The notes beneath the pieces were generated by a model. That model was not told the DNA's origin. It did no database searches and saw nothing but the letters and a program-made list of their open reading frames with translations. Below are positions 3,282 to 33,371 of a stretch of 64,000 nucleotides of DNA, in pieces. How positions within the stretch are numbered: the first letter of the stretch is position 1; each line of letters opens with the position of its first letter. The position numbers and the translations under genes are program-made. The DNA is from Macrostomum lignano (taxonomy: Eukaryota), in NCBI GenBank assembly GCA_002269645.1, contig NIVC01002656.1, positions 1 to 64,000 of the forward strand, read 5' to 3'.

Positions 3282-4323
<1,042 letters not shown>

Positions 4324-4733: not shown

Positions 4734-5255
4734 TTAGTTCCGGTCGGAATCTCCTGCGCTCAAGCCGCGCTTCCAGAACGGAGCTCGCTTCCAGAACGGA
4801 GCCCGCTTCCAGAATGGGGCGCGCTTCCAGAACGGAGCCCGCTTCCAAAACGGAGCTCGCTTCCAGAACGGAGCCCGCTTCCAGAATGGGGCGCGCTTCC
4901 AGAACGGAGCCCGCTTCCAAAACGGAGCTCGCTTCCAGAACGGAGCCCGCTTCCAGAACGGAGCTCGCTTCCAGAACGGAGCGCGCTTCCAGAACGGAGC
5001 CCGCTTCCAGAACGGAGCCCGCTTCCAAAACGGAGCTCGCTTCCAGAACGGAGCCCGCTTATTTTCGCCATGCAGTCCAGCAGTCCACCGAGCGATGATT
5101 TTCTTTGTCACATCCTCATTCAGGATACTACCGGTACTGCGCATCTCCCGTGTCAGGTGCCTGCTGGTGCTTTCCAAAGCGGAGGAGGCGTCATCCACTG
5201 CAACAACCGCTAGAAGGACCGATGCGAACAACAATGTCAGCGACAACCTTGGCAT
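4734..5255 (-). CDS. Neuropeptide precursor: signal peptide plus 16 x APFW flanked by dibasic KR sites
   Basis: ATG at 5255; hydrophobic signal MPRLSLTLLFASVLLAVVAV; (KRAPFW)16 then KRGLSAGDSDRN*. Variation among the 18-nt units is synonymous. AATAAA on the minus strand at 4600-4605 and 4486-4491. Confidence 0.9.
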   Translation of the reverse strand: MPRLSLTLLFASVLLAVVAVDDASSALESTSRHLTREMRSTGSILNEDVTKKIIARWTAGLHGENKRAPFWKRAPFWKRAPFWKRAPFWKRAPFWKRAPFWKRAPFWKRAPFWKRAPFWKRAPFWKRAPFWKRAPFWKRAPFWKRAPFWKRAPFWKRAPFWKRGLSAGDSDRN

Positions 5256-5606
5256 TGTAGCGCAGGTTTCACTGCAACATAGATTGAAAAATTCAAACGT
5301 ACCTGGTATATTACGAGCGTAAAAGTCTATACGATGACATCTGAACGTGAATGCATCAAAGACATGTTTACCTTAAAGGCTTTCGATACAGTCAATAATT
5401 CACAAAATATTTTGCCGCTAATCCGCCTTGTTGACTCAGAGTGGGGCGAGCGGAGCGACCGTGAATTACCGACTTTATAAGATGCTGGTGGATTGTCAGC
5501 CTTTGCCGATTTGCTGGAAGTCTGTGAGCTCTGGTTGGCTCGATGAATACGGATCTTTTGAGGGCTCGTGTCTTCGTTGTCTGCTTCCTGTCTTCTGAAA
5601 TTTTTT

Positions 5607-6292
5607 CTAGTGTCTGGCTTAGTGCACTAGTGACTTAGTGCACTTAGTGTCTTAGTGTCTGGCTTAGTGCACTAGTGACTTAGTGCACTTAGTGTCTTAG
5701 TGTCTGGCTTAGTGCACTAGTGACTTAGTGCACTTAGTGTCTTAGTGTCTGGCTTAGTGCACTAGTGACTTAGTGCACTTAGTGTCTTAGTGTCTGGCTT
5801 AGTGCACTAGTGACTTAGTGCACTTAGTGTCTTAGTGTCTGGCTTAGTGCACTAGTGACTTAAGTGCACTTAGTGTCTTAGTGTCTGGCTTAGTGCACTA
5901 GTGACTTAGTGCACTTAGTGTCTTAGTGTCTGGCTTAGTGCACTAGTGACTTAGTGCACCTAGTGTCTTAGTGTCTGGCTTAGTGCACTAGTGACTTAGT
6001 GCACTTAGTGTCTTAGTGTCTGGCTTAGTGCACTAGTGACTTAGTGCACTTAGTGTCTTAGTGTCTGGCTTAGTGCACTAGTGACTTAGTGCACCTAGTG
6101 TCTTAGTGTCTGGCTTAGTGCACTAGTGACTTAGTGCACTTAGTGTCTTAGTGTCTGGCTTAGTGCACTAGTGACTTAGTGCACTAGTGTCTTAGTGTCT
6201 GGCTTAGTGCACTAGTGACTTAGTGCACTTAGTGTCTTAGTGTCTGGCTTAGTGCACTAGTGACTTAAGTGCACTTAGTGTCTTAGTGTCTG
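5607..6292. repeat. 45-bp higher-order repeat built from (c)ttagtg subunits
   Basis: Unit approximately ttagtgtctggcttagtgcactagtgacttagtgcacttagtgtc. Confidence 0.9.
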
Positions 6293-6455
6293 CGTACAAT
6301 ATTAAAACTAGTGCGGGATACGCCAAAGGCTGCTTCAACTGATCTAGCCCGTCCAACCAAGGCTCTTTGATGGCACCAGAAGGCGATGCTCACTAGTTGA
6401 GTCCAGCATCTTTACAAAATCTCACTAAAAATCAAAATAACAGGCAACTACAGCC

Positions 6456-6975
6456 ATGGTGCAGCTTCATTCAGTAGACAAGCAGCGAATTACATGTAGC
6501 ATCAAGCGGCGAATCGAATTGTCTCTCACAGTGGGTGGAGCAGTGGGCAATTTTTGTTCATTTACTCTCGTTTGGTCTGCTACTGGACTTCACCGGATCT
6601 TTACAAGATGTCGGCCGAGTCTGCAGCACAAGATTTCAAGGTGACACCGACGATCCAGTTGAAATCAAAGACGCATTCGTTCCTGAGTTCATCTGCGAGG
6701 AGTTTGATTTGCCGACTACCGACGACCCTGATGTACAACGACTTCTCTTGGAGTTCAAAGACTTCAGTAGAGAAAAAGCCGGGGCTAACTCGATCAGCCA
6801 GGACAGTGAGAGCTTTTGGCTATGGTTTAGATGTGGAGGTCCTGCAGTTAAACCTGTGGTCCAGGCTTTGCGAGTGAGGTCCAGGCATTGGACTTGCTTG
6901 CTTCTCCATGAAAATTTCCTTTCCATAGAGGGTACGAGGGGCTTCGTGGTCCAGAGTAGTCTAGTTTGTTGGTAG
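6456..6975 (+). CDS. Putative small secreted protein with a divergent CUB-like domain; join(6456-6473,6532-6975), 153 aa
   Basis: gccATGg at 6456; 58-nt GT-AG phase-0 intron; signal-like WAIFVHLLSFGLLL. CUB-like pattern: C...C...QRLLLEFKDFS...FRCG...LLLHENFLSIEGTRGFVVQ, compared with CUB RIxLxFxDFxLE...RxCG...LxVxFxSD..GRGFxAxY. Pattern recognition only. Confidence 0.5.
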
Positions 6976-9900
6976 TGTAGTGAAACTACAAGAAAACTTA
7001 AGAGTTGAATGGAAATATATTTTATGAGTTTAACGATGTAAGGATTGGGGCGAGAAACTTAGCTGCGAGAAAGAACTGTAAAAGGAAATTAGTCTATGGC
7101 AAATTATAACAACTGAGTCGCAAATAAAAAGTACAACAAAATACCCATACGACTCCCCCCTCCAATTGCGGAGCTCGGAGAAAACAGACTGTAACCGAAG
7201 TCTTAAATGGTTGAATAGCTTATATGATCAAAACGAAGCGGGTAGGACAGTTGAAATAAATTCTACATGAGAAATCGAACATTAAAAAAAGAGAGAATAT
7301 TGAGAAAAACTGTCAGAAGACGTTATACGTTACAAAGGTTAATAATAAATGTAATCATTTTGGCGAAAAATAACAAAGAACTTGTCGGTTCGCTGTTTCA
7401 CGCGATACGGCCCTGAGTACGGCCCTCGAGCGGCGACCGCACACGATCGACCCGAACCCAGACGAATTCAGCCATTTTCAGGTCCTTGGGTACGTAGCTC
7501 CGTGGTTCGTGCGTCGTCGCATGTGGACTCGGTAGCTATGTCAGCAGTTCCTGCAGCCGCGTCCGAATATCCGTTGGGGCGAGTGGTTCGGAAGTCAGAA
7601 CGCGCGGAACCATCGGAAGCTCGCCGGTAACTCTGGTGAACGGTGATACTCCTTGATCGTCAGGTGCAACGTGCATCGCGAGAAGAGCCACAGGTAGGTC
7701 TGTCAGCCAATCATTGCCTCGAGGACGTAGCATCGTCTTCAGGGTGCGATGGGCTCGCTTGAACTTGCCATTGGTTTGAGGGTGGTACGTCGTTGTGCGT
7801 AATCGATGAAAACCAATTGATGACGAGACCGAGTGAAAGAATTCTGATTCGAACTGGCGCCCGCGATCAGTGATTACATACAGTGGCACTCCGTAGCGCG
7901 AGACCCAGGACGAGACGAATGCATGGGCGACTACTTCCGCGGTTATTGATTCCAGTGGTGTAGCTTCTAGCCAGCCAGTCGAGCGGTCGACCATCGTGAG
8001 AAGGTAGCGGGCAGACTGGTGGCCGAAGTGGTGGCATTAGCTGGTGGGAGTGGTCCTACAATATCGATGTGTACCACCTCAAAGCGATTTGATGGTAGTG
8101 CAAAGGCCTGTTGCGGGGAGACAGTGTGACGAGTTACTTTACTCCGTTGGCAGTCCTGGCAGTTCCAGCAGTAGGTCTTGATGGACTTGCACATTCCGGG
8201 CCAAAAGTAACGTTCTGTGATCAGTTTTGCTGTTTTACGGTAGCCGAAATGACCAAGTCGATGGAAGGAAGCAATCACGGCGTCGCGGAGAGACGGCGGA
8301 ATGATCGGGCGAGGATACAGCGTTGACGTCTCACACCAAACGACGACGTCTTTGTCCAGAGAATACAATCGAATATTTCGTGCCGGTGAGAACGACTCCG
8401 GTCGTTGTCCTTCAGCGATACTGGGCAGATCAACAGGGAATTGGCTTGATGGGGCAGCGACTACAGCGTCTGTTGCGATGTTGGACACGTGATTATTCAC
8501 TGGGAAGTCAGGCAGTCGAGAAAGGGCATCTGCTATTACGTTGTCTGCACCGCGAATGTACTGGAAATCTGCCACGTACTCGGAAAAAAACGGTCAAGTA
8601 GTCCTGATTGCGATCTGACGTAGTGGTGCGATTGGCGTGGAAGGCCTGAGCTAGTGGTTTATGATCGGTGAACAAGGTCACGATCCGTCCTTCAATGAGG
8701 CTGCGGAAGTGCAACACTGCCAGGTACGCTCGTACGCCGCGAGTAGTTCTCGGTCGAACGTGATGTACGTCCTTTGGGATGACGACAACTTCTTGCTGAA
8801 CATGCCGAGAGGTGACGTTCCGGTTGAAGAGGTTTGATGAAGAACGGCACCAACACAGTCGGCTGAGGCATCAGTGTACAGGTATCTCCCGCAGTACAGT
8901 TTGGGTCCGGATGATGCAGAAATAGTCTCTCTGAGAGAACTTGTTTGATGTTTTCGAAAGATTTCTGATGCTGCTCTGTCCATTGTAAGTTTCCTGCTGA
9001 CTGTAGTCTTGCAGCGGATAGATGCAGTCAGCGAAATTTGGAACGAATCGGTGGTAGAACCCGACGACGCCGAGGAAGCGCCGAAGTGCGTTCGAATCCG
9101 TGGGTGTCGGTCAGTCAGTGATTATTTGGATCTTCTTCTGGAGAGGTCTTATTCCTTCAGGAGTCACGCGGTGGCCAAGTAAATCTACCTCGGACTGAAA
9201 GAATTCACATTTCTTCAAGTGAACCTGCAGTCCGTGTGTTCTTAGGCGGTCTAAAACTTGTTCTAAATGCGAGTAGTGGTCCTCTCGAGTCTTCGAGAAT
9301 GTCAGGACATCAACGATGTAAGAGATAACGAATGACAGTCCGTGAAAAACAGAGTCGATGAAATGTTTAAATGTTTGTGCTGCATTCCTCAGGCCGAAGG
9401 GCATGCATGTGTACTCGAACAATCTAAACGATGTGGTGATAGCGGTTTTTCAGATATCCTCTTCTGCGATTAGAATTTGATGAAAGGCGCGAACAAGGTC
9501 TAACTTTGAAAACACAGTGCTTCCGTGTAGGTACCGAGTGAAGGTTTGAATATGTGGAACCGGATAGTTGTCCGGCTTTGTTGGTTTGTTCAGTTCACGA
9601 TAGTCACCGCACGGACGCCAGCCAGCTCCCTTGGTGCCATGTGGAGGGGTGACGCCCAAGCGCTTGAGGATGGTCTGAGGTAGCCGGCATCGATTAGCTG
9701 CTGAAACTCCTGCTTTACAGCCTGCAGTTTTGCAGGGTGCAGTTGCCGGGGTCGCAAGTGAACCGGTTGTCCACTACCAGTGTCTAGCCGGTGAACAGTG
9801 TCGTGCTTGACCTCTGAAGCTGGCGGAAGGGCTCCGCCTTCAACGAAAGAAAAACAATCTGCAAACTTTGTAAACAGCGTACTCGTCCGAGAATCCAGGT

Positions 9901-11520
9901 TGAGTGGCAGTTCTACCGACACAGTGAATGGGCCAGAATGAACATTTGAAATTGACAAGGTAACAGTGGACAGTCCTGTTTCTGAGTCTCGAACGTGTTT
10001 GCGCTGGCAATCGACAACTGGCAAATCGACAATCTGGCAATCGACAACTAACCCATGGTGAGCCAAGAAGTCGTAACCAATGATGGGTTTTACCACTGAG
10101 GCGACGAGAAAGGTCCACTGGAAGCGCGTCGCAAACGGTGGATTGAGACATCCAGTAGGACCGACCCGCAAACTGGTATGGCGGCTCCGGTAGCAGTAAT
10201 TAAACGAACGTTTGTATCTTGAACGAGTACGTTAACGAGGTGAGGTGGAACAATGGAAACCGAAGCTCCGGTATCCACAAGAAACTTGCTGTATGTATTG
10301 TTGATTTTAACATCTAACTCCAAACAGGTGGTCGATGGTATCTTGGCACTGCGCACCGCGACCTCGGTCGCAGTGCGACTTAGCTTTTTGGCTGTCGAGA
10401 AGGTGATGGTGAACGCGACTGAGATGGCGTTTTTTCATTAGGATGCGGCACTCGGATCGGAAGCGAGCTGTCCTTGGGAAACTGGCACCAGGGGCGACAC
10501 GACTATGGCGGCCATAGTAGAGGTGTGAGCGGCAAACGACGGGGCGTTGGCCAGGCTTAAATGGGTCTGTTCCAGTGGGCTTACCAGGTGCATGTCGTTG
10601 TGGAGCTTGCTCAGAACGCTGTTAGGGTGTCCGGTCTGCACCGGTCTGCTGAATTGGGCAAACCGTCGCTGGTGATGGAGAGCTAAGGCCTCTAACGATC
10701 AACATTGAGTCAGCAATCTCGGAAATTTGCTGGGATGACTGCTGTTGGAATCCCAAAAGTGCGATACGAAGGTCCTGGGGTAGACAGCGCATCAGCGTGG
10801 CGTTGAGGAGTTCCTCGTCGGGCTGTATCCGGCACTGCTCCATCTTGCTCCGGAGCTTGCGCATGAAAATTGATGGCTTGTCTCCTCCGAGGTCCGAGAC
10901 TTGCAATACTTCCGAAACCTTCTCCTGCTGGGACTTCTGCTGAGTTGATGTTATCGTTGTCTTCAATTGTTCGTACTGTTTTGGGAGTCTGAGCGGACAA
11001 ATGCAGGGCCGCGATATCTTCCGGTAGATGAGAAACTAGGTGGTAAAATTTGGCGGTCTCGTTGGTCACCCTGTTGAGCATAAATTGGGCCTCCAGCGTG
11101 AGGAACCATGCTTCCGGGTTGTTGCGATAGAAGATTGGCAGCTTCAGGTGGGCCAGGGAGACTATAGCGGTGTCGGCGGCGTTTCCTAATGCAGGTGTAA
11201 CCACTGGTGCGGCCGAACTTGGTGCGGCTTGCGTGGTTGTAGGTGGTGTAGGAGCGGAACTGTTGCTGGCACTGTCCGTCATTGGATTCGTCTTATGTGA
11301 GTACTGAGTATGCGGGTAATATCTTTCGCCGCCTCACCAGACCAATTTGTAGTAAAACTATAAGAAAACTTAAGAGTTGAATTGCAAATATATTTTATGA
11401 GTTAACGATGTAAGGATTGGGGCGAGAAACTTAACTGCGAGAAAGAACTGTAAAAAGAAAATTAGTCTGGCAAATTATGACAACTGAGTCGCAAATAAAA
11501 AGTATAACAAAATACCCATA
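6976..11520 (-). mobile_element. Ty3/Gypsy LTR retrotransposon (CsRn1-like), full length but decayed
   Basis: Direct LTRs at 6976-7149 and 11348-11520, with roughly ten differences by eye. PPT (plus-strand ctcccccctcc) at about 7153-7163. Gag KLPIFYRNNPEAWFLTLEAQF; protease FLVDTGASVS; RT WASPLHM, FSKLDL, MPFGLRNAAQTF, YIVDVL; RNase H TDASADCVGAVL, FDRELLA, FTDHKPL; integrase HHCC (H..GH, CQDCQ) and core (TDRGRQFES, YHPQTNG). Many frameshifts and stops. Candidate TSD GTAG (6972-6975 / 11521-11524). Confidence 0.95.
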
Positions 11521-12587
11521 GTAGGTAGACATGACCGCTGTGGTTTTCGACTCTGAGAGTCTGAGACCAAGTCTGAGACCAGACACTCTCTGGACAGGTG
11601 CAATTTCTGAGCAAGGTGAGTGTGGGTAGCCCTGGACTCTAAGCTCTCTGCCAAAGGCCTCGAAGAGGACATTTGTCGAAGGCCCCCTGAATGTTCAGGA
11701 AAAGCAATCAGTTCAAGACTTGATAGACGACACAGGCTAAACAGTCGAGATGTAAGTGTTTGGTATTTAAATTAAGCCGTATGTAATAATAATCGGAATT
11801 GATTCTTCAGATGGGATCCTGGGGCATTTTTCTTGACGCAATAATAATTTGGCGGTACCAGTAAATATAACCAAGAGAAGTAACACAACAGCTAATTGAC
11901 TCCTATAGTAACTAGTAGCGAGTAACTTCTAGTGTTCTTTGTGCGGACCTGGAGGAAATGGATGAAGCAACAAGTTAGTGAAACACATCTACCGATGAAA
12001 ATACCTCGTATTGGCTATCTCATGAAATGCCTGCATCGTTAAGGACAAAACAGAGCTAGACTAGCTAGAGCAACGCGTAACTCAATACGCGCAGCCTCAT
12101 CAAGGATGCGGTGGATCAGCTGATAGTGAGAGCTAGCAAAAACAATTAGATAGCTAAGTGAGTCGAAATTTAGTCATGTTAAAAATAATTTTTACAATTT
12201 TATCTGCAGAAACAGTTTTACATGCCCAGCTGAAAGAACTCACTCAGCTACAAAATTATAGTTGATTTTTTCAACTCGTGAATTTTACATGTATTTAGGT
12301 AAAGCACTCTTTTGAGAATCAAAAAAATGTTTGTTGTCATTTGTATGCATAGATAATCAATTCAAGAATTCCATTCGACAAATTGAATGCTCTGGTAGAT
12401 TAATGTTTGAATTAAGATAAAATTTTTCACAGAAAGGAATGTCAGTTTTTGTTTAAATTAAAATTCCATTGTAGCTACTGAAATTCAATAAAAACGACTT
12501 TAAAAAGCAAGAACCATTTTAATATTATGTGAGAAAAACATTTTACCGGCTATAATTAATTTTCTTGATTAAACAGACAAACAAGCG

Positions 12588-14376
12588 ATGCAGATGTCCT
12601 TAGCCACAAGCACTGCTGTCTTGCTGATAAGCGCTGCCATTTTGGCCAACTTCTTTACACACGTGGAGTCCCGTAAGTTGACAACTCAAGATGTTTTCTT
12701 GTGTGTTGCTTTTACTGCCGAATTTCAGATGATGTCAATCCTACATTGAATTAATTATCTGTCATAAGTCCACCTAGGAAAAAACATACAAGTTAAGTAA
12801 CTATTTTGTTAAATTTAGCTTAAAATTCTTTAGCGAGGAATTGGGGGTCCGTAGGGAATAGCTGAGATGTCAAGACTCAGAGTATGATTGCTGAAATGCT
12901 GTGGCTCAAGACTCCTGGAAGAATCGCTTCAATTCCAAAGCCCAAAAGGGGGTGCTGTCATGCTGATATCAACTAACAATAGTAACTGTAAAAGGTCAAA
13001 AGCCGCATGTTCTAGTTTATTCAAAAAATTGATTCCTTACCTTTTGCTTCCCCCAATGAGGGGCGAAGATTGCTAGTCCTATATACTAAATATAGTCCTT
13101 ATGTATATCCTTAATGTATCTTCTCCAACGGGTTTTTCTTGACCAAACCTTATGCAGCGCACTATCAAAAATGAAATATTTGCGAAATCTGCTTCATTAC
13201 TCTTCATTTAGTCTTCTTTTCAATTTTGTCGTCATTGGAAATAAGCATCGAAAAGCACACATTTGGTTTGTTTTCAAAATAACAAAAACTATCTGGGAAT
13301 TCAAAATGCATAAATCTCGAGGATTAATTGCTCAAAAGTTGAGAAAGTTCCACCTCGAGAATGCATTTTGAACCGAAACTGGTTTTCAGTGAAAGTTTCT
13401 TGTGCGAGTGTAGCACATTTCTAATTGTGCAGTTCGATATTTCTCCTATCGCTGTCAGAGTGCTACATATTTTACCTATAATGCGTTTACTTTAACAACA
13501 TATCACCATCTATCAATACACCCAGTTCGCAAAAAAAATTGTCAAAACAATTTCAGTCATGATCAGCAAAAAATGTAAGTCTTTTCTTCTTTAAAATTAT
13601 TCTGCAAATACGTGCACTCGTGGTATAGGCGTTGCTGCATTTGCAAGCCGCGCAATATCCCCCATTCTGACAATAAAGTTTTTGCCATAGACTACGATGC
13701 GGAGGGGCAAAGGAGCTCAACGTTGAACGCGTCTGACTCCTTCGCCACGAACGTGGAGGAAGGAATAGAATGGAGTGCTAATCTGTGCCAGTTATTTTTG
13801 TCTCGCTCGATCGACCTTCACTTTTTTAGCATCCCTTTCCTCCCGTTCCTTCCTATTGGCTACATTTATACATTTCAGAGGTAAATGTATGTCCCACAAC
13901 GGCAACGTCTGCACAGAAAATGAGTGCTTATATTATTTAATTGCTTTACCTAATTGCTCTGATGTGACTTTAGACTGAGACCTACTCACATTGCCGGTAG
14001 AGAGTAGTGGGCAACGCAGCGTGTTGGCACTTTTAACTGTATTATTTTCAGTCGTCTCATGCATTTTTCAGACGAGTACCAAGGTTGCTTCGTACATGCC
14101 CGAGAAGCACAAGCAATACCGTTAGGGCACAAAGTGGACAACTCGTCCAAAATGACTGCGGACGTCTGCGCTGAGGACTGCAGCTGGAATGACTACGCTT
14201 ACTTCGGGCTAAAGTCCGGTTCAGAGTGCTGGTGCGGCAACCGAATTAACTCAATCAAAATTTCATTCAACTTTTGCAACAGGATTTGCAATGGCAACTT
14301 CCAAGAAACATGCGGCGGGAGCAGTCATGTGCAAATTTACAAGGGAGTCAGTCTTGCCAGCTTGAAGAAAAAGTAA
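12588..14376 (+). CDS. Small secreted WSC-domain protein; join(12588-12672,14072-14376), 129 aa if it ends at the TAA
   Basis: Signal exon MQMSLATSTAVLLISAAILANFFTHVES with a phase-1 gtaagt donor. A phase-1 acceptor (tttttcag|14072) opens YQGCF...MTADVCAEDC...YAYFGLKSGSECWCGN...CNRICNGNFQETCGG, a complete WSC cysteine pattern. A gtaagt at 14373 could indicate a further exon. Confidence 0.8.
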
Positions 14377-14391
14377 GTCGCGTGCCATTGT

Positions 14392-14995
14392 TGAAACACC
14401 TCTCTACTACAGCACTCCACTACAGCAACTCTCCACTACAGCACTCCACTACAGCATTACTCCACTACAGCACTCCACTACAGCACCTCTCCACTACAGC
14501 ACTCCACTACAGCACCTCTCCACTACAGCACTCCACTACAGCATTACTCCACTAGAGCACTCCACTACAGCACTCCACTACAGCATTACTCCGCTACAGC
14601 ATTACTCCACTACAGCATTACTCCACTACAGCATTCCACTACAGCACTCCACTACAGCATTACTCCACTACAGCATTCCACTAAAGCTTTACTCCACTAC
14701 AGCATTCCACTACAGCACTCCACTACAGCATTACTCCACTACAGCATTCCACTACAGCACTCCACTACAGCATTACTCCCCTACAGCATTTCACTACAGC
14801 ACTCCACTACAGCATTCCACTACAGCACTCCACTACAGCATTACTCCCCTACAGCATTTCACTACAGCACTCCACTACAGCATTCCACTACAGCACTCCA
14901 CTACAGCACTCCACTACAGCATTACTCCACTACAGCATTACTCCAATACAGCATTACTCCACTACAGCATTTCACTACAGCACAACTCCACTCCA
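14392..14995. repeat. 13-16-bp minisatellite (ctccactacagca[tta])n
   Basis: Directly visible. Confidence 0.9.
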
Positions 14996-15357
14996 CCACT
15001 CCACTAGTCAAGGACGGCTCCAACAAGATCCTACTGGACCAGGCTGCCAATAATGCGGCCGTACATAAGAGATTGTGGGCCAGTAGCTGCAACAACCAAT
15101 GTTCATCTAACTTTTTCAGACTGCATATTAATGACACAAAATGTTTCGGAATGCTCGTGTTTGAAATATTGCTCTCTGATCAATCTAATAACCCAAAGCT
15201 GCATTCATGATGTGAGAGCCGATAAAGCCACAAATAAACTGATTTCGTGCAATCTCAGCCTTTCCTTTTTCCGTTAAAATTTCTTTGACAAACTCTCGGC
15301 TGATGCTGAGACAGCATGTCATTACTGTGTATTGAATTGCTCGCATTTAGGAGCTAA

Positions 15358-15520
15358 ATACAGATGAATAACATATCTAACAGCTGAATAGCATATCTAA
15401 CAGATGAATAACATATCTAACAGCTGAATAGCATATCTAACAGATGAATAACATATCTAACAGATGAATAGCATCTCTAACAGCTGAATAACAGATCTAA
15501 CAACAGAATAACATATCAAA
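15358..15520. repeat. 20-bp minisatellite (aacagatgaataacatatct)n
   Basis: About 7-8 units visible. Confidence 0.85.
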
Positions 15521-15689
15521 TAAAAATACGCTCGTACGCATCAAAATCAAAACAGAAGAAGAACAATAAGTAATATTGTGGGTTTTTATTGGATTAATAG
15601 AAAAAAGTGGATGAAGGCCAGATTTTGCGGTTTTTACATCTGTTCATTAGGGCAGGTGTAATCAATTATTGTTATTATTTACATTGATA

Positions 15690-16713
15690 TAGTGCCTTAG
15701 TGTACTAGTGCCTTAGTGTACTAGTGCCTTAGTGTACTAATGCCTTAGTGTACTAGTGCCTTAGTGTACTAGTGCCTTAGTGTACTAGTGCCTTAGTGTA
15801 CTAGTGCCTTAGTGTACTAGTGCCTTAGTGTAATAGTGCCTTAGTGTACTAGTGCCTTAGTGTACTAGTGCCTTAGTGTACTAGTGCCTTAGTGTACTAG
15901 TGCCTTAGTGTACTAGTGCCTTAGTGTACTAGTGCCTTAGTGTACTAGTGCCTTAGTGTACTAGTGCCTTAGTGTACTAGTGCCTTAGTGTACTAGTGCC
16001 TTAGTGTAATAGTGCCTTAGTGTACTAGTGCCTTAGTGTACTAGTGCCTTAGTGTACTAGTGCCTTAGTGTACTAGTGCCTTAGTGTACTAGTGCCTTAG
16101 TGTACTAGTGCCTTAGTGTACTAGTGCCTTAGTGTACTAGTGCCTTAGTGTACTAGTGCCTTAGTGTACTAGTGCCTTAGTGTACTAGTGCCTTAGTGTA
16201 ATAGTGCCTTAGTGTACTAGTGCCTTAGTGTACTAGTGCCTTAGTGTACTAGTGCCTTAGTGTACTAGTGCCTTAGTGTACTAGTGCCTTAGTGTACTAG
16301 TGCCTTAATGTACTAGTGCCTTAGTGTAATAGTGCCTTAGTGTACTAGTGCCTTAGTGTACTAGTGCCTTAGTGTAATAGTGCCTTAGTGTACTAGTGCC
16401 TTAGTGTACTAGTGCCTTAGTGTACTAGTGCCTTAGTGTACTAGTGCCTTAGTGTACTAGTGCCTTAGTGTACTAGTGCCTTAGTGTACTAGTGCCTTAG
16501 TGTACTAGTGCCTTAGTGTACTAGTGCCTTAGTGTACTAGTGCCTTAGTGTAATAGTGCCTTAGTGTACTAGTGCCTTAGTGTACTAGTGCCTTAGTGTA
16601 CTAGTGCCTTAGTGTACTAGTGCCTTAGTGTACTAGTGCCTTAGTGTACTAGTGCCTTCGTGTACTAGTGCCTTAGTGTACTAGTGCCTTAGTGTACTAG
16701 TAGTGCCTTAGTG
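15690..16713. repeat. 16-bp minisatellite (tagtgccttagtgtac)n, highly homogeneous
   Basis: About 60 near-identical units. Confidence 0.95.
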
Positions 16714-17270: not shown

Positions 17271-17684
17271 TCATTCGATCTCGTTGACATTTTTCACGAT
17301 CCAGTCTACCAGTCGCTGTTTGATGCTATCGTAGCTCATGTTCTCAAAGTTCAGGTCGAGTCGCAGCGGCTCGTACTCAAAACCGGACGGTGCCCACATC
17401 TGCACGTAGGGCACGGTGACTACGTCCTTCACCTCGGGTATGTTTGGCCGCTGACATTTTGACGTGTCAAGTGCAGACATTCGGATGGCCAGCTTGGCGT
17501 TAACCAGGCCCTTGGACTTCCACTGGCCTAATGACCATCTGCTCAGATCGTCGAAAATCGGTATGAGCTTACTCTGACAGATCTGGCAGGTCTGGGCGCT
17601 GTAGAGCAGCACCTCGACTCGCTGGCTTCTGTACTTGTAGCGCACAATCTCCTCTGCGCTGATCCAGGCTAGCGAGGCAGCCAT
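17271..17684 (-). CDS. Thioredoxin-fold protein with a CQIC motif, 137 aa
   Basis: gtcATGg start. VEVLLYSAQTCQICQSKLIPIFDDLS parallels Trx/PDI VxFYApWCxxCk.l.P.f; a VTVPYV cis-Pro-like segment follows. Confidence 0.65.
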   Translation of the reverse strand: MAASLAWISAEEIVRYKYRSQRVEVLLYSAQTCQICQSKLIPIFDDLSRWSLGQWKSKGLVNAKLAIRMSALDTSKCQRPNIPEVKDVVTVPYVQMWAPSGFEYEPLRLDLNFENMSYDSIKQRLVDWIVKNVNEIE

Positions 17685-20839: not shown

Positions 20840-23800
20840 TCACTGCTGCTGCGACTCCAAAAAAGTGTTTCCAATTCCATCAGTCAGCCAGTCGCCGTCG
20901 CCGCACGTTTCACCGACGGCAAGGACGCACGGCGTCCAAAGCGTCGCTCGGACGCGACGACCACGACGTCGACGCAAGCGCCGCTGGCGTTGAGCATTTG
21001 AGTGCTGTTGCTGCTGCTGCTGCTGCCTCTCCTCTTGCTGCTGATGAAGCAGAAACTCGTCCATGAGAGCGTCCGCGGCGCCGCGTCCTCCACCATCCAG
21101 TAGTTGCTGTTCGACGTCCTCAGCCTCGTCCTCGTCGGTGTCCACGGTGGGGCACCGGATTCGACACTCCGGATCGAGCGCCTGCCGCTCGTCTCGCCAG
21201 GCCAGGGAGTGGCCCCACACCTGCAGGCCGGGACTCTGGGCTGCCGCAGATTCAGCCGCCCAGCAGGGGCTGGCGAGGACACGGGTTCGAATCTCCGATT
21301 GAGGCGTCGAGGTTGCGTCGAGCGAACCGGCTGAGGCTGTATCGGAATGACAGAATGAGATTCTGAATGAATGAGAGCGAGTCACTCTTTAACAGCTATT
21401 CGTATCACTTTCCGCTCGCTCATCCACCCTCTCACCTTCTCCCCATCTCACACTCTCCCCATCTCACCCTCTCCCCATCTCACCCTCTCCCCATCTCACC
21501 CCTCCCCATCTCACCCTCTCCCCATCTCACCCTCTCCCCATCTCACCCCTCCCCATCTCACCCTCTCCCCATCTCACCCCCTCCCCATCTCACCCTCTCC
21601 CCATCTCACCCCCTCCCCATCTCACACTCTCCCCATCTCACCCCCTCCCCATCTCACCATCTCCCCATCTCACCCCCTCCCCATCTCACCCCCTCCCCAT
21701 CTCACCCTCTCCCCATCTCACCCCCTCCCCATCTCACCCCTCCCCATCTCACCCTCTCCCCATCTCACCCCCTCCCCATCTCACCCTCTCCCCATCTCAC
21801 CCCCTCCCCATCTCACCCTCTCCCCATCTCACCCCCTCCCCATCTCACCATCTCCCCATCTCACCCCCTCCCCATCTCACCCTCTCCCTATCTCACCCCC
21901 TCCCCATCTCACCATCTCCCCATCTCACCCCCTCCCCATCTCACCCCTCCCCATCTCACCATCTCCCCATCTCACCCCCTCCCCATCTCACCCTCTCCCC
22001 ATCTCACCATCTCCCCATCTCACCATCTCACACTCTCCCCATCTCACCCTCTCCCCATCTCACCCCCTCCCCATCTCACACTCTCCCCATCTCACTATCT
22101 CCCCATCTCACCATCTCACACTCTCCCCATCTCACACTCTCCCCATCTCACACTCTCCCCATCTCCCCATCTCACACTCTCCCCATCTCACACTCTCCCC
22201 ATCTCCCCATCTCACACTCTCCCCATCTCCCCATCTCACACTCTCCCCATCTCCCCATCTCACACTCTCCCCATCTCCCCATCTCACACTCTCCCCATCT
22301 CACACTCTCCCCATCTCACACTCTCCCCATCTCCCCATCTCACCATCTCCCCATCTCACCCTCTCCCCATCTCACACTCTCCCCATCTCCCCATCTCCCC
22401 ATCTCCCCATCTCACCATCTCCCCATCTCACCATCTCCCCATCTCACCCCCTCCCCATCTCACCATCTCACACTCTCCCCATCTCACCCTCTCCCCATCT
22501 CACCCCCTCCCCATCTCACACTCTCCCCATCTCACCATCTCCCCATCTCACCATCTCACACTCTCCCCATCTCACACTCTCCCCATCTCACACTCTCCCC
22601 ATCTCACACTCTCCCCATCTCACACTCTCCCCATCTCCCCATCTCACACTCTCCCCATCTCACACTCTCCCCATCTCACACTCTCCCCATCTCACACTCT
22701 CCCCATCTCACACTCTCCCCATCTCACACTCTCCCCATCTCCCCATCTCACCCCCTCCCCATCTCACCCTCTCCCCATCTCACACTCTCCCCATCTCCCC
22801 ATCTCACCATCTCCCCATCTCACCATCTCCCCATCTCACCCTCTCCCCATCTCACCCTCTCCCCATCTCACCCTCTCCCCATCTCCCCATCTCACCATCT
22901 CCCCATCTCACCATCTCCCCATCTCACCCTCTCCCCATCTCCCCATCTCACCATCTCCCCATCTCACCCTCTCCCCATCTCACCCTCTCCCCATCTCACC
23001 CTCTCCCCATCTCACACTCTCCCTATCTCACTCTCTCACCGTCGCACCCTCTCTCACTCTGTCATAACCTCTAATCTATTCTTCAATCAATCATATTTTC
23101 CTATAAAACCCAACAAATACGGTTTTATAGATAGCCCTTGAAACTATTAATGTAGGGACCCGAGCCGATTTTAAGACACCTAAAAATTTATATATCCACA
23201 CGAAGAATCACGGAGCTCTTAGGAGGGAGGCCCAGTCAATCATGCTGAGAGATAATTACTAATGTTCAATTTACACCCCTATATATAGAGAATAGCCTAT
23301 ATATGAGTCAACACAGTTATAACAATCTCACCAAGAAAGACTTAAGAGTTAAAATCCTCATCAATAAACACCCTATACTCAAAGCTGCACATCCTTTAAA
23401 TATTTTAGAGTCCGAATTTCGAATAATAAGTGCCTGTGTCTATTAGCTGACTTCCTAAAATCCTTTAATCTAACCAAGACTCAAGCTTAGCTCAACACAC
23501 ACGCAGTTCTGCAGCTTGAATTTAATCTGTGTCTGAAACTCTGAAGGTTTCTCTACATACTCGTATAGATTTATACAAGTGAATTATTTGATTTTGGGCA
23601 CAGAGACAGGCGGCTGAATCTATTTATTCATTTATGGCTACTCATGCTGGACTGCTTGGCGCCTTATTTGACTCATCCTGCTTGGCGCCTCATTTGACTC
23701 ATCCTGCATGCTTGGCGCCTCATTTGACTCATCCTGCATGCTTGGCGCCTCATTTGACTCATCCTGCATGCTTGGCGCCTCATTTGACTCATCCTGCTTG

Positions 23801-26800
23801 GCGCCTCATTTGACTCATCCTGCTTGGCGCCTCATTTGACTCATCCTGCTTGGCGCCTCATTTGACTCATCCTGCTTGCTTGGCGCCTCATTTGACTCAT
23901 CCTGCTTGGCGCCTCATTTGACTCATCCTGCTTGGCGCCTCATTTGACTCATCCTGCTTGGCGCCTCATTTGACTCATCCTGCTTGGCGCCTCATTTGAC
24001 TCATCCTGCTTGGCGCCTCATTTGACTCATCCTGCTTGGCGCCTGATGCATGACCAACCTGACCAAAGCTACAGTTGAAATCAAGCTTAGCAGCTTCTTT
24101 TCAGTAAAATACGCAGGCAAAATGCCTTATAACAACTCAAAACTCACAGTTGCCGCTGCTGTCGTTGCACTGCAGCTGCTGAAGTCCTTCATCATCTCCT
24201 GGTACAGCCGCACTATGACAGAGCAGTATCACTTTAGCCGGCTTCCGACTATTCAAGTGCGGGTTGGCTCGAGCTTCGCTGGCCTCGAGTTCGCGCAGCA
24301 CCTCCGCCAGATTCTTTATGTACTGGATGGCGTATTTCAGCGTCTCCACTTTGGACAGCTTCCGATCCTCCTTCTGCTCGATCGGCAGTCGGCGTCGGAG
24401 ACCGTCGAACGCGGCATTTATTGAGCGCATTCGTTTGCGCTCGCGCTGATTGGCCGCTCGGCGTTGGTGCATCCGACGGGAGCGGGCGTCCGTCATCTGC
24501 CTGCGATGCGGCCGCTGCTGCTGATGCTCCTGCGGCGCAGCTGCCTTGATACACTTTGCGCTATCCTTGATTGATGCCTGCCACTCGATCGGCTGATCCA
24601 GATCGATGCTTGGATAGACAGCTTGATGCTGAGCCATCGGATGCTGGGAAATGTACTCAACAAACTGATGCTGATTCTGGTCGGTAAAGTTTGAGAACTG
24701 CTCAATAGGATAGCCACAGGATTGATGATGCTGATTGACAGGCATTTGAAACTCTGTTGGGTAGTATGGGGCCTCACGGTTGGGCTGGAATAAGATTTCG
24801 GGGTAAAAAAATGCCCAATAAAACGACCACTGCAGTGTGATAGAGGAACACCTCAGCTGCTAGGGGAATATTTTCCTAAAATGAAATCGGTTTGTCCTGA
24901 CCAGTTATGCCTAATTATGTTAATTAGCTAGCATAATTAATTTATGTACTCGAAATTAGCCGCTTCCTTCATGTGAAATCGCCTAAAAACTGCTTTTATG
25001 AGCTGTGTTCGCATTAAAATCTGTAGCTATTTAATATCAATATATATTAGTATTAGTTATAGAAAGTGAGCACTTTGTAGTTCATATTATTAGTACTCAA
25101 AAATTAAAGAAAAAAATAGAAATATCCAGCGTTTCAGAGAAAGGGTCTCTTCAAAACTGAGCAGCAGGTTGGACATTTGGATAGCACCTATTAAAATTTA
25201 TATCAATAAAATTAAATATATGATATAATTATAATATAACTTATATAGCAATTCATGATCAGTTTATGTTTTAGCATGCAGGTACTACGAGATACATGTC
25301 ACAGATAAAGAAGAGAATATTGCTAATCTGAGCAGAAAAGTCTGGGTCAAAAGTTTTTTTAGATATTGAATATTTCTTTTGAATTACTTCCATTGCCAAT
25401 AGAATCAATATTCAAACTTTTGGATGTTGAACTTTTAGATAGATCCCTTCACAAATTGTCATGGAAGTATTGCTCCTATTATACTGTTTTTCTTCATCCA
25501 TGTAGTAGTGCTGGTAACAACAGCATGCAGCAAAGTAGGCTGCACAACACGACAGTAAATTTAGTCAAATGAAAAGCCATCACCGCATTAAATATGTCAC
25601 TGCATTAGATATGCCAGCTGTTATACGCCACTGTTGCCTGCAGCAGCCTATTGCCGAACTGTGGGTGATCGGCTGGCAGCCTGTAGCGCTGCCAAGTCCG
25701 CTGGAAATCCGAGTGTGCGCTCTCTACTGCCTGTTCGCTACAAGTTCCAAGTGCACGACCAGTGCGATGGCAGAAGTCGCTCACGTGGCAAAGGAGAACA
25801 TGCACTTTGGGCGTGACAGTCAATCCCAGTGCCAGGTATGCAGCTCCAAAATTTTCGATTCGCTCACCAAAATCCGGGACCAATTCCTGGCCAAATGCTC
25901 CATTAACAACGCTGTTGAAGCAAATCAAGCACTGGGCGAAGGGCTGTAGTTCATGAGGAACGTCTTCAAGAAGAACCTCAGCCATCAGCAGCAATTTGCG
26001 ACAAGCGTTGCCTTCCATTGTGCCGCCGCGGTACCCCGCTCGCACGATGCCGTGAGATTGTAGCCATGCAAATCCGCGGTCTTCGCCCCAAGCTTCGTTC
26101 AAAGAATCAAGCAATTTGTTACTGATTCCGAGCAGAAGATGCAGTTCAGGAGGGGGCAGCAGCATCAGCACTTCCTCGTCATCATCACCAGCCAGCAGCG
26201 GCAGATTGACACAGTTCATGAACTGCTTCGCTCTGCTCCAAACTCGTCCAGCAGAATTGAACTCCTGCACTTTCTGCCGAATTCTACCGAGGGTTCGTGG
26301 CCTGCCGCTTGTCGTCAGTGGTGCAGTAGACTCGCAGTACGGACATGGGTGAGCACACGAGTGAGGCTGGAGTCCGCAGAGAATGTTTGCTAGCTTCATG
26401 TCTGTGACAGTCACAGCAGACAGCTCTACCACAGAAACAGCCTGTAGCAGTGTTTTTACATTTTTGTACGTTTCTGAGATGTCGTTGACGATTGCGAGAA
26501 CTATAATTTTTTTCACTCCGGCGTCATTGAACTGTGAGTGGCGTCGCACACTTTCGTGAACTGCAGCAGCACCGCCGTGCACCTGATGGTCAGACGTGGA
26601 CGCAACGACAGACACGCAAATCTTAAAAAAACCTCCGCCACCATCAAGCCCCAGCCGGCATTCGAAGTTAGAGGCTCCTCGCTGTTGGACAATAAATTCA
26701 ATGAGGCGCGAAGCATCAGTGCAGAGGACAGCAGCACGATCACCAATGGCAGAAGATGACAGCTCGAATTGAAGTGTCTTAAGTTTAAAAAAGTCTTCCA

Positions 26801-28296
26801 ATACACGATTCTGAGTCACTAATGAATCTTTCAGCCTAGATTCAACTGCTCGCGAAGAGCTTGCACCAGCTCTCAGTACCTGCGCGACCTGCAGCGTCTG
26901 ATTGTTGCTAAGATTCAGCACACCTTTCAGTGTCTTCATTGTGCTGATAGAAGTTGCAGGGAAGCTGGTTGCTCCATTGCCCACACTAGCACCAACAGTC
27001 ACGCGCATTGGGCGACCACCTTCCATCCGTGACAAGGAAACACAGCTGGAGCCACTTGCTGCAGCCTTTGTTGATATGCAGCTGCTGGCCAGCATGTCCT
27101 GCGTATCAGGACTGACACCCTGCTGCAGATTAGTCAGTCGCGTTGCTCTTGAGCAGTTGTGTTTCTTGCCACGGCCAATTTCTGATCGACAAAACGAGCA
27201 AATGAACTGTGGTTGTGCTGCATCAGCTGCCGACAATGGATGTTTTCGAGGTCGTCCTGGACGAGATGCAGCAGCGCCAGTACTGTAAGAGCTGACAGAA
27301 GTTGTCAACTTGCTGCTGTTCTTCGATCTGGCAAGCTCGCACAGTTCGCAAGAGCAATGCGGATTATTTCTTGTGGACGGAGGCAGACTCTGCAGGTCGG
27401 CAACCATCTGCTCATAGTTTAGCCTTGGTGGCAACTCACGAGGCGCTGGACCAGATAGAGATGAAATGATGCGTCGACACCCGTCACACAAGCCGGTCGG
27501 CAGAATGTGCTGTACAGAGGCGAAATTCGGCACCAAATCCTCAGCAGAAAAATTGGCTACCGACCAAATTGAGCGCGAGGCTTTCCGCAAACAGAGCAAA
27601 CACAGACTCTCTCTGCACTCCTCATGTGATTTTTTTGCATTCGGCATATTCTGAAATTCTGAAATTGATCGCTGGCCACTGATGCAAGAGACAAATGTTT
27701 TGAATTTGGCCTTGACTTGAGTATTGGTTGTGATATTTATTTGAGTGCTGATATGAGTTGGCTATGAAAGTTGCAATAATCAATGTACATCTGACAGTCC
27801 GACGCATATGAAATAGAACAGTACGAACGTACGTACGTTCATGTGCTAATTTCGATATTGAGCAAAGAGAGTGCGTGAGACCTAGAGCACAACAGTTCAT
27901 ATTGAAGCTAGAGCAGAGCATTGGCTGCTGCATACATTCTGATTAGCAACTGCTCATCCAGTATAATAGCAGTTTATATCATAAAAACATAAAAGCAGAC
28001 CAGGCCATAAAAGCAGTTTTTAGGCGATTTCACACGAAGGAAGCGGCTAATTTCGAGTACATAAATTAATTATGCTAGCTAATTAACATAATTAGGCATA
28101 ACTGGTCAGGACAAACCGATTTCATTTTAGGAAAATATTCCCCTAGCAGCTGAGATGTTCCTCTATCACACTGCAGTGGTCGTTTTATTGGGCATTTTTT
28201 TACCCCGAAATCTTATTCCAGCCCAACCGTGGCCTCTGTGTGGAATAGCGATTCGCCCACTGCGCTCCATTGCTGCTGCTGGTTGTGAAGTTCCAT
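20840..28296 (-). CDS. PTF1A: PTF1A bHLH transcription factor; join(28296-28232, 24770-24148, 21336-20840), exon 1 interrupted by a Chapaev transposon
   Basis: bHLH QRRAANQRERKRMRSINAAFDGLRRRLP...LSKVETLKYAIQYIKNL. PTF1A-specific AKVILLCH motif, and the C1 motif GHSLAWRDERQ in exon 2. Phase-1 donor (24148|gtgagt) matches a phase-1 acceptor (atacag|21336). Removing the transposon and one TSD copy gives a 1185-nt ORF starting MELHNQQQQW (394 aa). Confidence 0.9.
21420..23055. repeat. C/T-rich minisatellite (ctccccatctcacc variants) in the PTF1A intron
   Basis: Directly visible; the ORFs here are artefacts. Confidence 0.95.
23650..24045. repeat. 26-bp minisatellite (cttggcgcctcatttgactcatcctg)n in the PTF1A intron
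   Basis: About 14 units. Confidence 0.95.
24775..28231 (-). mobile_element. Chapaev-type DNA transposon, apparently intact and autonomous (3457 bp)
   Basis: 226-bp TIRs (24775-25000, 28006-28231; 2 mismatches seen), CAC...GTG termini, 4-bp TSD GCCT (24771-24774, 28232-28235), and one uninterrupted 680-aa transposase ORF. Confidence 0.92.
25605..27647 (-). CDS. Chapaev transposase (RAG1/Transib-related DDE), 680 aa
   Basis: N-terminal Chapa Zn finger H-x7-C-x2-C...LP-x3-C-x2-C, followed by CxCxxC and CxxC-x8-HxC. Catalytic-core motifs LGLDGGG (D), VTDMKLANILCGL (D), CPYC, PELHLLLGI, EGNACRKLL, TPKVHVLLCHV and SEQAVESAH (E). Confidence 0.9.
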   Translation of the reverse strand: MPNAKKSHEECRESLCLLCLRKASRSIWSVANFSAEDLVPNFASVQHILPTGLCDGCRRIISSLSGPAPRELPPRLNYEQMVADLQSLPPSTRNNPHCSCELCELARSKNSSKLTTSVSSYSTGAAASRPGRPRKHPLSAADAAQPQFICSFCRSEIGRGKKHNCSRATRLTNLQQGVSPDTQDMLASSCISTKAAASGSSCVSLSRMEGGRPMRVTVGASVGNGATSFPATSISTMKTLKGVLNLSNNQTLQVAQVLRAGASSSRAVESRLKDSLVTQNRVLEDFFKLKTLQFELSSSAIGDRAAVLCTDASRLIEFIVQQRGASNFECRLGLDGGGGFFKICVSVVASTSDHQVHGGAAAVHESVRRHSQFNDAGVKKIIVLAIVNDISETYKNVKTLLQAVSVVELSAVTVTDMKLANILCGLQPHSCAHPCPYCESTAPLTTSGRPRTLGRIRQKVQEFNSAGRVWSRAKQFMNCVNLPLLAGDDDEEVLMLLPPPELHLLLGISNKLLDSLNEAWGEDRGFAWLQSHGIVRAGYRGGTMEGNACRKLLLMAEVLLEDVPHELQPFAQCLICFNSVVNGAFGQELVPDFGERIENFGAAYLALGLTVTPKVHVLLCHVSDFCHRTGRALGTCSEQAVESAHSDFQRTWQRYRLPADHPQFGNRLLQATVAYNSWHI

Positions 28297-28780
28297 GCTA
28301 TAGCAGGGCTTCGGCTCGGCTCTGGTTCTCGGACAAGTTCCCGTTTGGTTGAGTAAGTTCATTTAAATCGAGCGCGTGAGAAGGGGCTGGTCTGAACGGT
28401 CATTGGCGGAGGCGATGCGGCGGGCACTAGCTAATTGGTTGAGAGATTGAGTAGTCGGGAGGGAGGGGATGCTCGTGTATTTGTTAAATTCCACTACTGC
28501 GAGCTAAAAAGGATAACCTATCTTCATTCTCATTAATCAATTCTATATACTAAGACTGACACACTGACTGAAGGATAAAGTAGCGCGGTTGATAACGTCT
28601 AAGGATAACGTAGTCTAAGCTTGTGTTTTTTCAATAACAAAATTTTTTTCTTTTTTTAACAAACATTAAATTTAAAAACGTATGTATAGAAAACTGTAAT
28701 TTTACGTTAACTTAACTAACTGTGGCACTTCAAACAGTTACATGTACCTGTTCTTAATGATCAGGGATACAGGAGGCAAT

Positions 28781-32042: not shown

Positions 32043-32202
32043 ATGCACGAGGATTCGAACATGGCTAGCAACTATCAGAAGCTCGAACACGTGCGGGCTC
32101 GCTACTCCAGGCTTCAGCACCAGCGCCAGCACGTCGAGGAGCAGCAAACGCATGCTCAACAGCAGAAGCAGCAAAAACAGCAGCAGCAGCAGCAACAACA
32201 GC

Positions 32203-32233
<31 letters not shown>

Positions 32234-33371
32234 TCAGCAGCAACACCAGCAACTCAGTCGCAGTCGCGATCGCCGGTACCTTCTGCCTCCGCCACCGATC
32301 CGCAATCCTCTACTGGCTTCTCAGGACGTTGATCATTCTTTGCGACGCTTGCAAAGGCAGCAGCACCAGTTCCAAGGCGCACATCTGCAGCAGAAGGAGC
32401 CGCAGCAGCCTCAGAATGAAGCTCAGCAGCCTGAGAGAGAACCTCAGCAGCCTCAAAAGGCAGCTCAGCAGCCTCAGACTCAGAAAGAGCCGCAGCAGCC
32501 CCAGAGTTCAGAGATGTTGCAGCGGTTTCTCGCCAGTCTCCCGTCGACGCCGCCGCCGCCTCTCAGACGGTCGCGCTCGCCGGCGCCCTGGTCGCAACGC
32601 CATCTCGCAACAAAGCTCGTCTCGCTGTCGCGGGCATCCCTCCTGGCTTTCCCTCCGACCACCAACACGGAGGCGGCGGCGCCCCCAGCCGACCAGGCCG
32701 CCTCACCCGACGTGGCGACGGATGCCGAGGCCAACTCGAGCAGCCTTGTGAGCTCCTCGTTCGACGCCGTGACCACGCTCGACGAGCCGACCGCGACCCG
32801 GCTAACGCCAGCTTCGCCTCCTGACCCGTCGCCGTCGCCTCGGCAGCACCGCCAGCAGCAGCCGTCGCTACGCCGGTCTCGTCACACCGCGCGGATTCGC
32901 AGCTCCTCGCTGGAGATCCGCTCGATGCCGAGCTCGCCGTGGCGGGAGCAGCAGCGCCAGCCGCAGCTCAGAGACAACCTCACAGCGCCGCCGGTGCCGA
33001 AGCCGAGGTCGCGAAACCACGCAGCCGACGGGCCGAGTCATCGCGGCCGGTCCAACTCGAACAGCCGGCAGCCGGTCGAGCAGCAGACTCCAGTCTGCCA
33101 GGTGTTCCGCGTGACAGACGCGTCTGACGTTTTCAGCTCTCTCGTGACCAGGGAGGATCGCCGGCTGTTGAAAGTCCTCAGCCACTTCAGCTGCCAGGCC
33201 GAGGTTCTGGAGACGCTGAAGCTGCCTCGGCGGTGTCGCGGGGCAATCGTCAGCATCAGCGGGCCAGACTGGCGGCGGCTGAGCTGGTGCGTTGACAGAC
33301 TTCAGAGCCTCTTTCCCGAGTGGGAGCTCAAGTTTCAAATGCGCAGCTGCTGCAGAACCCGGCTTTGTTGA
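32043..33371 (+). CDS. Intronless Q/P-rich protein with a C-terminal degenerate KH-like domain, 442 aa
   Basis: Long GC-rich ORF with polyQ and PRS-rich disorder. The last ~90 aa follow beta-alpha-alpha-beta-beta-alpha KH topology (VFRV, FSSLVTREDRRLLKVLSHF, CQAEVL, IVSISGP, RLSWCVDRLQSLFP) but lack GxxG. Confidence 0.65.

Follow-up and report, generated by a model that had tools for sequence, protein, structure and literature searches.

The 5' end of a ptf1a/Fer1-type gene of the flatworm Macrostomum lignano, and the DNA transposon lying within it, were analysed in a window of 64,000 nucleotides (nt) that corresponds, with identical coordinates, to positions 1 to 64,000 of contig NIVC01002656.1 (assembly GCA_002269645.1). 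An earlier reading of the same letters (the original prediction) had placed an intact transposon in the first coding exon of PTF1A. The analysis indicates, with good confidence, that an autonomous cut-and-paste transposon of the Chapaev type has recently inserted at the 5' end of this gene in one of its homeologous copies. The features concerned are as follows (terminal inverted repeat, TIR; target-site duplication, TSD; open reading frame, ORF; basic helix-loop-helix, bHLH):

28361-28438, minus strand: putative core promoter, from motif matches only (CCAAT at 28438-28434 and 28406-28402; TATA-like TTTAAAT at 28367-28361).
28232-28296, minus strand: detached 5' piece of ptf1a exon 1, with a candidate ATG (28296-28294), codons MELHNQQQQWSAVGESLFHTE and 2 nt; contiguous with exon 1 in a transposon-free homeolog.
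28232-28235, either strand: upstream copy of the TSD, GCCT on the plus and AGGC on the minus strand; a single AAGC at the empty site of that homeolog.
24775-28231, minus strand: complete, very probably autonomous Chapaev-type DNA transposon, 3,457 bp, recognised from its TIRs, TSD, ORF, other copies and the empty homeologous site.
28001-28231, minus strand: 5' TIR, 231 nt, first letters 5'-CACGGTTGGGCTGG.
25605-27647, minus strand: transposase ORF, 680 amino acids (aa) plus stop, no internal stops, recognised from the ORF list, conserved columns, homology to Garfield_BM and an AlphaFold model.
24775-25005, minus strand: 3' TIR, 231 nt, last letters ...CCAGCCCAACCGTG-3'.
24771-24774, either strand: downstream copy of the TSD, GCCT on the plus and AGGC on the minus strand; the same single AAGC at the empty site.
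24148-24774, minus strand: remainder of ptf1a exon 1, with the annotated ATG (24745-24743), the bHLH domain and a GT donor at 24147.
20840-21336, minus strand: ptf1a exon 2, with the GHSLAWRDERQ and ATLWTP motifs and the stop codon.

Read 5' to 3' on the minus strand, the putative promoter is followed by the ATG at 28296 with 21 codons and 2 nt, AGGC, the left end of the element (CACGGTTGGG...), a 584-nt leader, the 680-codon ORF, an 830-nt AT-rich tail and the right end (...CCCAACCGTG), and then by AGGC again, CCCATACTACCCAACAGAGTTTCAA, the ATG at 24745 and the remainder of the bHLH exon. The transposase gene has the orientation of ptf1a. The insertion point precedes the annotated ATG by 30 bp and falls within an open frame, which is unbroken in the transposon-free homeolog. 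The two TIR arms (24775-25005 and 28001-28231) were 98% complementary over 231 nt, differing at 4 positions, and the terminal 29-mer occurred exactly twice in the window, at both TIR ends (0 expected by chance). Subterminal repeats of note were not found inside the TIRs. The window flanks read GGGGCCT/CACGG...CCGTG/GCCTCT and were, alone, compatible with a duplication of either 4 bp (GCCT) or 6 bp (GGCCTC).

The 680-aa product was matched exactly on five other M. lignano contigs, each holding the full 3,457-bp element at 99.8-100% identity, and a seventh full-length copy was 98.6% identical. All seven copies started with CACGGTTGGGCT and ended in ...AAC(C/T)GTG, and all seven were flanked by a 4-bp TSD (six perfect, one with a single mismatch) that read ATCT, TTGC, AACC, TATA/AATA, CTCG, GGCA or, in the window, AGGC, with no target consensus. 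The 6-bp duplication, with ACGG termini, was ruled out by the other six copies, which fixed a 4-bp duplication and CACGG termini. Because the 2-kb flanks of the full-length copies were mutually unrelated, transposition rather than polyploid duplication accounts for the copies. The predicted intact DNA transposon and its 4-bp TSD were thus borne out by the 231-nt TIRs, the GCCT duplication, the uninterrupted 680-aa ORF and six further copies. Its recency had been argued from the similarity of the TIRs. The recency stood but the dating argument did not: most arm-to-arm mismatches were common to most copies and therefore belong to the element rather than to decay after insertion, and recency follows instead from identity between copies, since the window copy shows 0 differences from the consensus of six copies and, over all 3,457 bp, none from one other copy (L002).

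Four more annotated M. lignano products (Mlig006248g1, Mlig012838g2, Mlig012838g5 and Mlig012838g7) were at least 90% identical to the transposase and, counted as annotated products at that threshold, point to a family of about ten loci. The identical copies at different sites, the intact 680-aa ORF, the insertions private to single homeologs and the gene identifier shared by several annotated loci (Mlig012838g2, g5 and g7) raise a tentative case that the family is still mobile in the laboratory DV1 line, as a naturally active, RAG1-related transposon of the Chapaev type. Proteins on other M. lignano contigs (P0003, P0010 and P0018) revealed a second transposase family, 56% identical (Mlig012066g1), and annotated chimeras of the transposase with peptidase M16 and ubiquitin-conjugating enzyme domains; the chimeras are likely insertions merged into gene models.

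The DV1 line of M. lignano carries three homeologous subgenomes (PMC10733133), with which the finding of a 137-aa downstream neighbour gene (17271-17684, minus strand) on three contigs agrees. One of these contigs, the homeologous NIVC01002477.1 (L009; 869-21282, reversed), was collinear with the window and went straight from 28231 to 24775. At its junction, CACAGAAGCCCCATAC, a single AAGC stands in place of the AGGC-element-AGGC of the window, and this empty site with one target shows a true insertion, with a 4-bp duplication, after the homeologs had diverged. Exon 1 of L009 is a single open frame (MNLLNQTGTCPRTRAEPKPCYSMELHNQQQHWSAVGESLFHTEAPYYPTEFQMPVNQ...) that runs through MELHNQ...APYYPTEFQM, and exon 2 is intact and 98% identical. 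Removal of 24775-28231 and one GCCT from the window had been predicted to fuse the flanks in frame; the resulting peptide reads MELHNQQQQWSAVGESLFHTEAPYYPTEFQMPVNQ..., and the junction exists as real DNA in L009. The absence of MELHNQ from every empty allele or orthologue had been named as grounds for rejecting the prediction, and an insertion-free copy that has it in frame was found in this contig. It was also agreed that a 4-bp excision footprint would shift the frame, if the site is coding.

Because at least one transposon-free ptf1a copy with both exons intact exists, the effect of the insertion is probably buffered by the intact homeolog or homeologs; the three subgenomes had been overlooked by the original prediction. 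Paralogous blocks of M. lignano differ mainly by indels and are ~98% identical at small scale (PMC10733133). Like other homeolog differences in this neopolyploid, those at ptf1a combine substitutions (2.5% in exon 1) with a 3.5-kb insertion; unlike them, the insertion falls at the 5' end of a gene for a developmental transcription factor. Since large homeolog-specific insertions are the rule in this genome, the case is ordinary except for the youth and completeness of the Chapaev element. It offers an example of homeologs in a young polyploid diverging through transposon insertion, with one ptf1a copy cut from its promoter and probably from its first 22 codons, and another intact.

Two further observations concern the homeolog. 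Divergence between the window and L009 was mosaic, at 0 in 28297-28740, 2.5% in exon 1 (24148-24745) and 3.6% in the proximal intron (23950-24146), and further downstream (7271-15942, 8.7 kb) it was 0.7%; the mosaic could be due to gene conversion or to chimeric assembly. Single-nucleotide differences that tell the two copies apart lie at 28270 (A/C), 24773 (G/A), 24716 (T/C) and 24620 (T/A). At L009 positions 2226-6821 both ptf1a exons were intact, yet no gene was annotated, and the deposited annotation covers the element-bearing copy only.

The annotated product of the host gene, BOX15_Mlig020777g1 (P0021, 364 aa), was reproduced exactly by joining exon 1 (24745-24148) to exon 2 (21336-20840). 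Its bHLH domain was matched by Pfam HLH at 5.6e-17 (residues 124-176 of the protein extended to the upstream ATG). The nearest named relatives in a profile search were a Bugula Fer1 and a Watersipora protein named PTF1A-like (both 1.3e-56; the names are automatic annotations), and other bHLH groups in that search (TCF15, achaete-scute and HLH-3) were matched at 1e-13 or weaker. Relatives share KKVVLKC after the bHLH, followed by H(A/S/T)LSW and (R/K)(L/I)W(I/F/T)P; the M. lignano product has KVILLCH, GHSLAWRDERQ and ATLWTP at these places, and its GHSLAW and ATLWTP were aligned with HALSW/HSLSW/HTLSW and RLWIP/KLWIP/KIWTP of the relatives. The human PTF1A motifs are HSLSWTDEKQ and KVWTPEDPR. 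A conserved C-terminal Trp of PTF1A is required for RBPJ binding (PMC6054649). The product thus resembles PTF1A/Fer1 in its bHLH, its KVI(L)LCH stretch and its two C-terminal Trp motifs, and differs in the spacing of those motifs (~90 residues against ~20 in relatives) and in an N-terminus that cannot be aligned with other species. Since the bHLH, the nearest named relatives and the shared Trp motifs agree, the name ptf1a/Fer1, which the original prediction had also given, is justified on sequence grounds. Literature searches on Mlig020777 and Macrostomum ptf1a returned nothing useful, and an exact-protein look-up of the 202-aa exon-1 ORF returned no record.

The transposase has a Cys-rich zinc-finger region at its N-terminus (C16xxC19...C54xxC57 plus more Cys clusters), candidate catalytic residues D335, D416 and E638, and the further motifs C435xxC438, L502-H503 and H616x4H621. 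Conservation was scored in an alignment of 13 sequences, comprising the transposase and 12 relatives at 28-57% identity. Invariant columns were D335 (DGGGGF), D416 (TDxKxxN), C435xxC438, PP-x-LHL (L502-H503) and K614xH616x4H621, and S637-E638-Q639..E642..H645 was kept in at least 90% of the sequences. A Pfam search with the transposase gave no family at E≤1, and a sequence search against the PDB gave nothing at E≤10. Pfam matches on the relatives were partial and confined to zf-AD (in 6 of 13) and DUF1280, and the Cys-rich N-terminus was conserved among them. A profile search returned 9,325 representative clusters at E≤1e-3, mostly unnamed; the catalytic core has no Pfam model of its own despite this number of matching clusters. 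DUF1280, a C. elegans family of unknown function, matched one relative (P0009, residues 192-326) above the gathering score, over a stretch that takes in the residues immediately ahead of the first catalytic Asp and those surrounding it, and proteins of this family may derive from Chapaev-like transposases.

Chapaev, the sister of Transib/RAG1, belongs to the CMC (Chapaev-Mirage-CACTA) group. Its published hallmarks are a 3-4 bp TSD, CAC...GTG termini and a DDE (Asp-Asp-Glu) transposase with the motifs C(2)C, LH and H(4)H (PMC4079192). These motif definitions were used here, and the sequence of Garfield_BM, a Chapaev3 transposase of Bombyx mori, was transcribed from supplementary Fig. S1 of the same paper. 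Garfield_BM was 24% identical to the window transposase (BLASTP E 7e-15), and was aligned with its profile by hhalign over 347 columns (98.1% probability, E 1.2e-13) with both Asp, CxxC, LH, Hx4H and Glu all paired. The element has CAC...GTG termini, a TSD within the 3-4 bp range and a homologous transposase that carries the DDE residues and the C(2)C, LH and H(4)H motifs; its Cys-rich N-terminus may be a further likeness to Chapaev, which is marked by an N-terminal 'Chapa' zinc-finger domain. On these features it is classed as a new Chapaev family, for which the single published Chapaev3 protein served for comparison. It departs from Chapaev in its very long TIRs (231 nt) and its lack of a target consensus, and in that the N-terminal finger of its relatives is scored as zf-AD-like. 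From Garfield_BM, with which it can be aligned over ~350 residues, it differs in its 4-bp duplication of varied sequences, whereas Chapaev3 elements duplicate TWA, Garfield_BM inserting between A and T with a 3-bp duplication.

The transposase was also modelled with AlphaFold (AF2; mean predicted local distance difference test score, pLDDT, 77). The model has the strand order of an RNase-H fold, with D335 ending strand 1 and D416 placed after strand 4. Its best fold match in the PDB was the RAG1 core (E down to 5e-12, ~570 columns, template-modelling (TM) score 0.40-0.57), followed by HzTransib (E 2e-7, ~500-520 columns, TM score 0.25-0.54); the match to Hermes was non-significant. The spacing of CxxC and Hx4H resembles that of the RAG1 zinc module. 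Such a fold is expected, since Chapaev and Chapaev3 have been placed as clades of the Transib superfamily (Kapitonov and Koonin 2015, PMC4411706). The likeness to RAG1 and HzTransib extends to the predicted fold and the CAC-type ends. Those systems have a 5-bp TSD and a CACAGTG heptamer with a nonamer, whereas here the TSD is 4 bp and the ends read CACGGTT; in addition, the element has no RAG2-like partner gene, and its transposase gave no sequence match to PDB chains. By analogy, the enzyme, with a DDE RNase-H fold and a zinc module of CxxC and Hx4H like that of RAG1, would bind the 231-nt TIRs, cut at the CAC ends and integrate with a 4-bp stagger.

A very young, complete Chapaev element with at least seven full-length copies in a model flatworm is the more useful by-product of the analysis. 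No Chapaev transposase is known to have been studied biochemically, and this one, if active, could be a tractable enzyme for the chemistry of the Chapaev/Transib/RAG1 lineage. If mobile in DV1, the element could become a native vector for transgenesis or insertional mutagenesis in flatworms, M. lignano being injectable and capable of transgenesis. Foreign transposon vectors worked poorly in this species (PMC5730564).

The insertion site was weighed as coding exon against 5' leader, and the coding reading was judged the somewhat more credible. The original prediction held that the ATG at 28296 is "therefore" the true start. The part of this that stood is the MELHNQ frame, which is open and contiguous in L009; the start itself is not established by it, because all three frames are open upstream. 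The coding reading is supported by the strong context of this ATG (agcATGg; the ATG at 24745 has a weak one, caaATGc) and by the substitutions between homeologs, of which both in the 90-nt extension, like 13 of 15 in the known coding part of exon 1, fall at third codon positions. An extra in-frame ATG at 28362 is overlapped by the TATA-like box, so that 28296 would be the first AUG of the mRNA. The CCAAT and TTTAAA motifs that had been predicted upstream were both found on the minus strand.

Four results weigh against a coding site. Upstream of Met31 (the annotated start, numbered in the extended protein), each of the three frames stays open for 31-52 codons, which makes frame continuity weak evidence, and the openness of the ORF was dropped as proof of coding for this reason. 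No protein with the MELHNQ extension was found in a collection of 5.8 billion protein clusters. The 444 nt upstream of the ATG at 28296 (28297-28740) are identical between the homeologs, so the scarcity of substitutions near the start could stem from gene conversion and need not point to coding constraint. Lastly, the sole annotated gene model starts at Met31, though the element forces that choice.

Taken together with this start at 24745, the open frames and the lack of a recorded extension fit a second reading, which is held to be the less probable of the two but is taken seriously: that the element lies in a 5' untranslated leader or outron, with translation truly starting at the annotated Met (24745) and the in-frame ATGs upstream being either fortuitous or absent from the mature mRNA. 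The gene might then tolerate the element, for instance through processing of its transcript at an acceptor that lies between element and ATG. A CAG/AG is present there (24756-24754), and 30-39% of M. lignano genes are trans-spliced to a spliced leader. As a trans-splice acceptor this site was considered and set aside, because its CAACAG agrees poorly with [T/C]TNCAG, the reported motif. Nor would the ATG with which the spliced leader is furnished at its 3' end be in frame with ptf1a. The contexts of the two ATGs and the third-position substitutions also speak against a leader, and the CCAAT and TATA-like motifs upstream of 28296 would place that ATG in the mRNA. A scan for bacterial-type promoters and terminators found nothing and is irrelevant for a eukaryote. 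On either reading, as had been predicted, the element parts the upstream region (CCAAT, TATA-like box and ATG at 28296) from the bHLH-coding part.

On the coding reading, the ancestral mRNA would have started near the TATA-like box (~28365) and used the ATG at 28296, an account held with the same modest preference. The element would then split codon 22 and sever the promoter and 22 codons from the bHLH part, and the element-bearing copy would be null or hypomorphic unless read-through or a promoter borne by the element yields protein from Met31. The intact homeolog or homeologs would probably supply ptf1a function.

Continued expression of this kind was considered unlikely. Transcripts from the element or its 3' end would give a protein from Met31 that lacks only 30 poorly conserved residues, and the insertion would be nearly neutral. 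The shared orientation of the element and ptf1a, the single weak ATTAAA signal in the 830-nt 3' part of the element, the frame that runs stop-free for 38 codons from the TIR into exon 1, and the untouched bHLH and C-terminal motifs are all compatible with this, as is the existence of a transcript-based gene model at the locus (PMC5730564). That model, however, need not reflect the element-bearing copy, since RNA-seq reads map to several homeologs and 93% of genomic-library read pairs are multi-locus (PMC10733133). In a read-through mRNA, Met31 would be preceded by the 680-codon transposase ORF and by many AUGs, and a promoter in the 3' TIR found no support. As far as its effect on expression can be inferred, the element-bearing copy is most likely null or hypomorphic. 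An assembly artefact, with a repeat misjoined into the contig, is highly improbable even though chimeric scaffolds make up 36% of the assembly length (PMC10733133), because a misjoin would not create a TSD, whereas here a complete element is flanked by a perfect 4-bp duplication of a target present once at the homeologous empty site and both flanks are collinear with the homeolog.

The analysis implies three corrections to the annotation: the ancestral N-terminus is probably missing from the deposited ptf1a model, no gene is called at the intact homeolog, and within the element an antisense ORF was called instead of the transposase. This 126-aa ORF (25569-25949, plus strand), entered as a gene on the window contig where the 680-aa ORF should stand, is probably an annotation artefact.

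The upstream neighbour (32043-33371, plus strand) is a single-exon gene for a Gln-rich protein of 442 aa with no Pfam matches. In exact look-ups, this protein and the 126-aa antisense ORF occurred only on the window contig. A CCDC158-like coiled-coil gene lies at ~35.5-43.4 kb (minus strand), in a range that spans several minisatellite arrays. A degraded long terminal repeat (LTR)-retrotransposon pol region lies at 7539-11333 (minus strand), where frame-shifted pieces matched rve, Integrase_H2C2, RVT_1, an aspartyl protease and DUF7041; it is common to the homeologous contig at 99.3% identity. Minisatellite arrays are very numerous in the window (periods of 8, 12, 21 and 28 nt and others) and carry long spurious ORFs in all frames. 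They were located as follows:

1.7-2.7 kb: minisatellite array.
3.1-4.4 kb: minisatellite array.
14.4-15.2 kb: minisatellite array.
21.4-23.1 kb: minisatellite array.
28.74-29.4 kb: minisatellite array.
29.9-31.5 kb: minisatellite array.
35.5-36.6 kb: minisatellite array.
37.4-39.7 kb: minisatellite array.
40.2-42.7 kb: minisatellite array.
44.1-45.7 kb: minisatellite array.

One array fills much of the ptf1a intron and another lies just upstream of the ptf1a promoter. Finally, a near-perfect palindrome at 50673-50859 (76-nt arms, 93% complementary, 35-nt spacer) may be a miniature inverted-repeat element or a hairpin.

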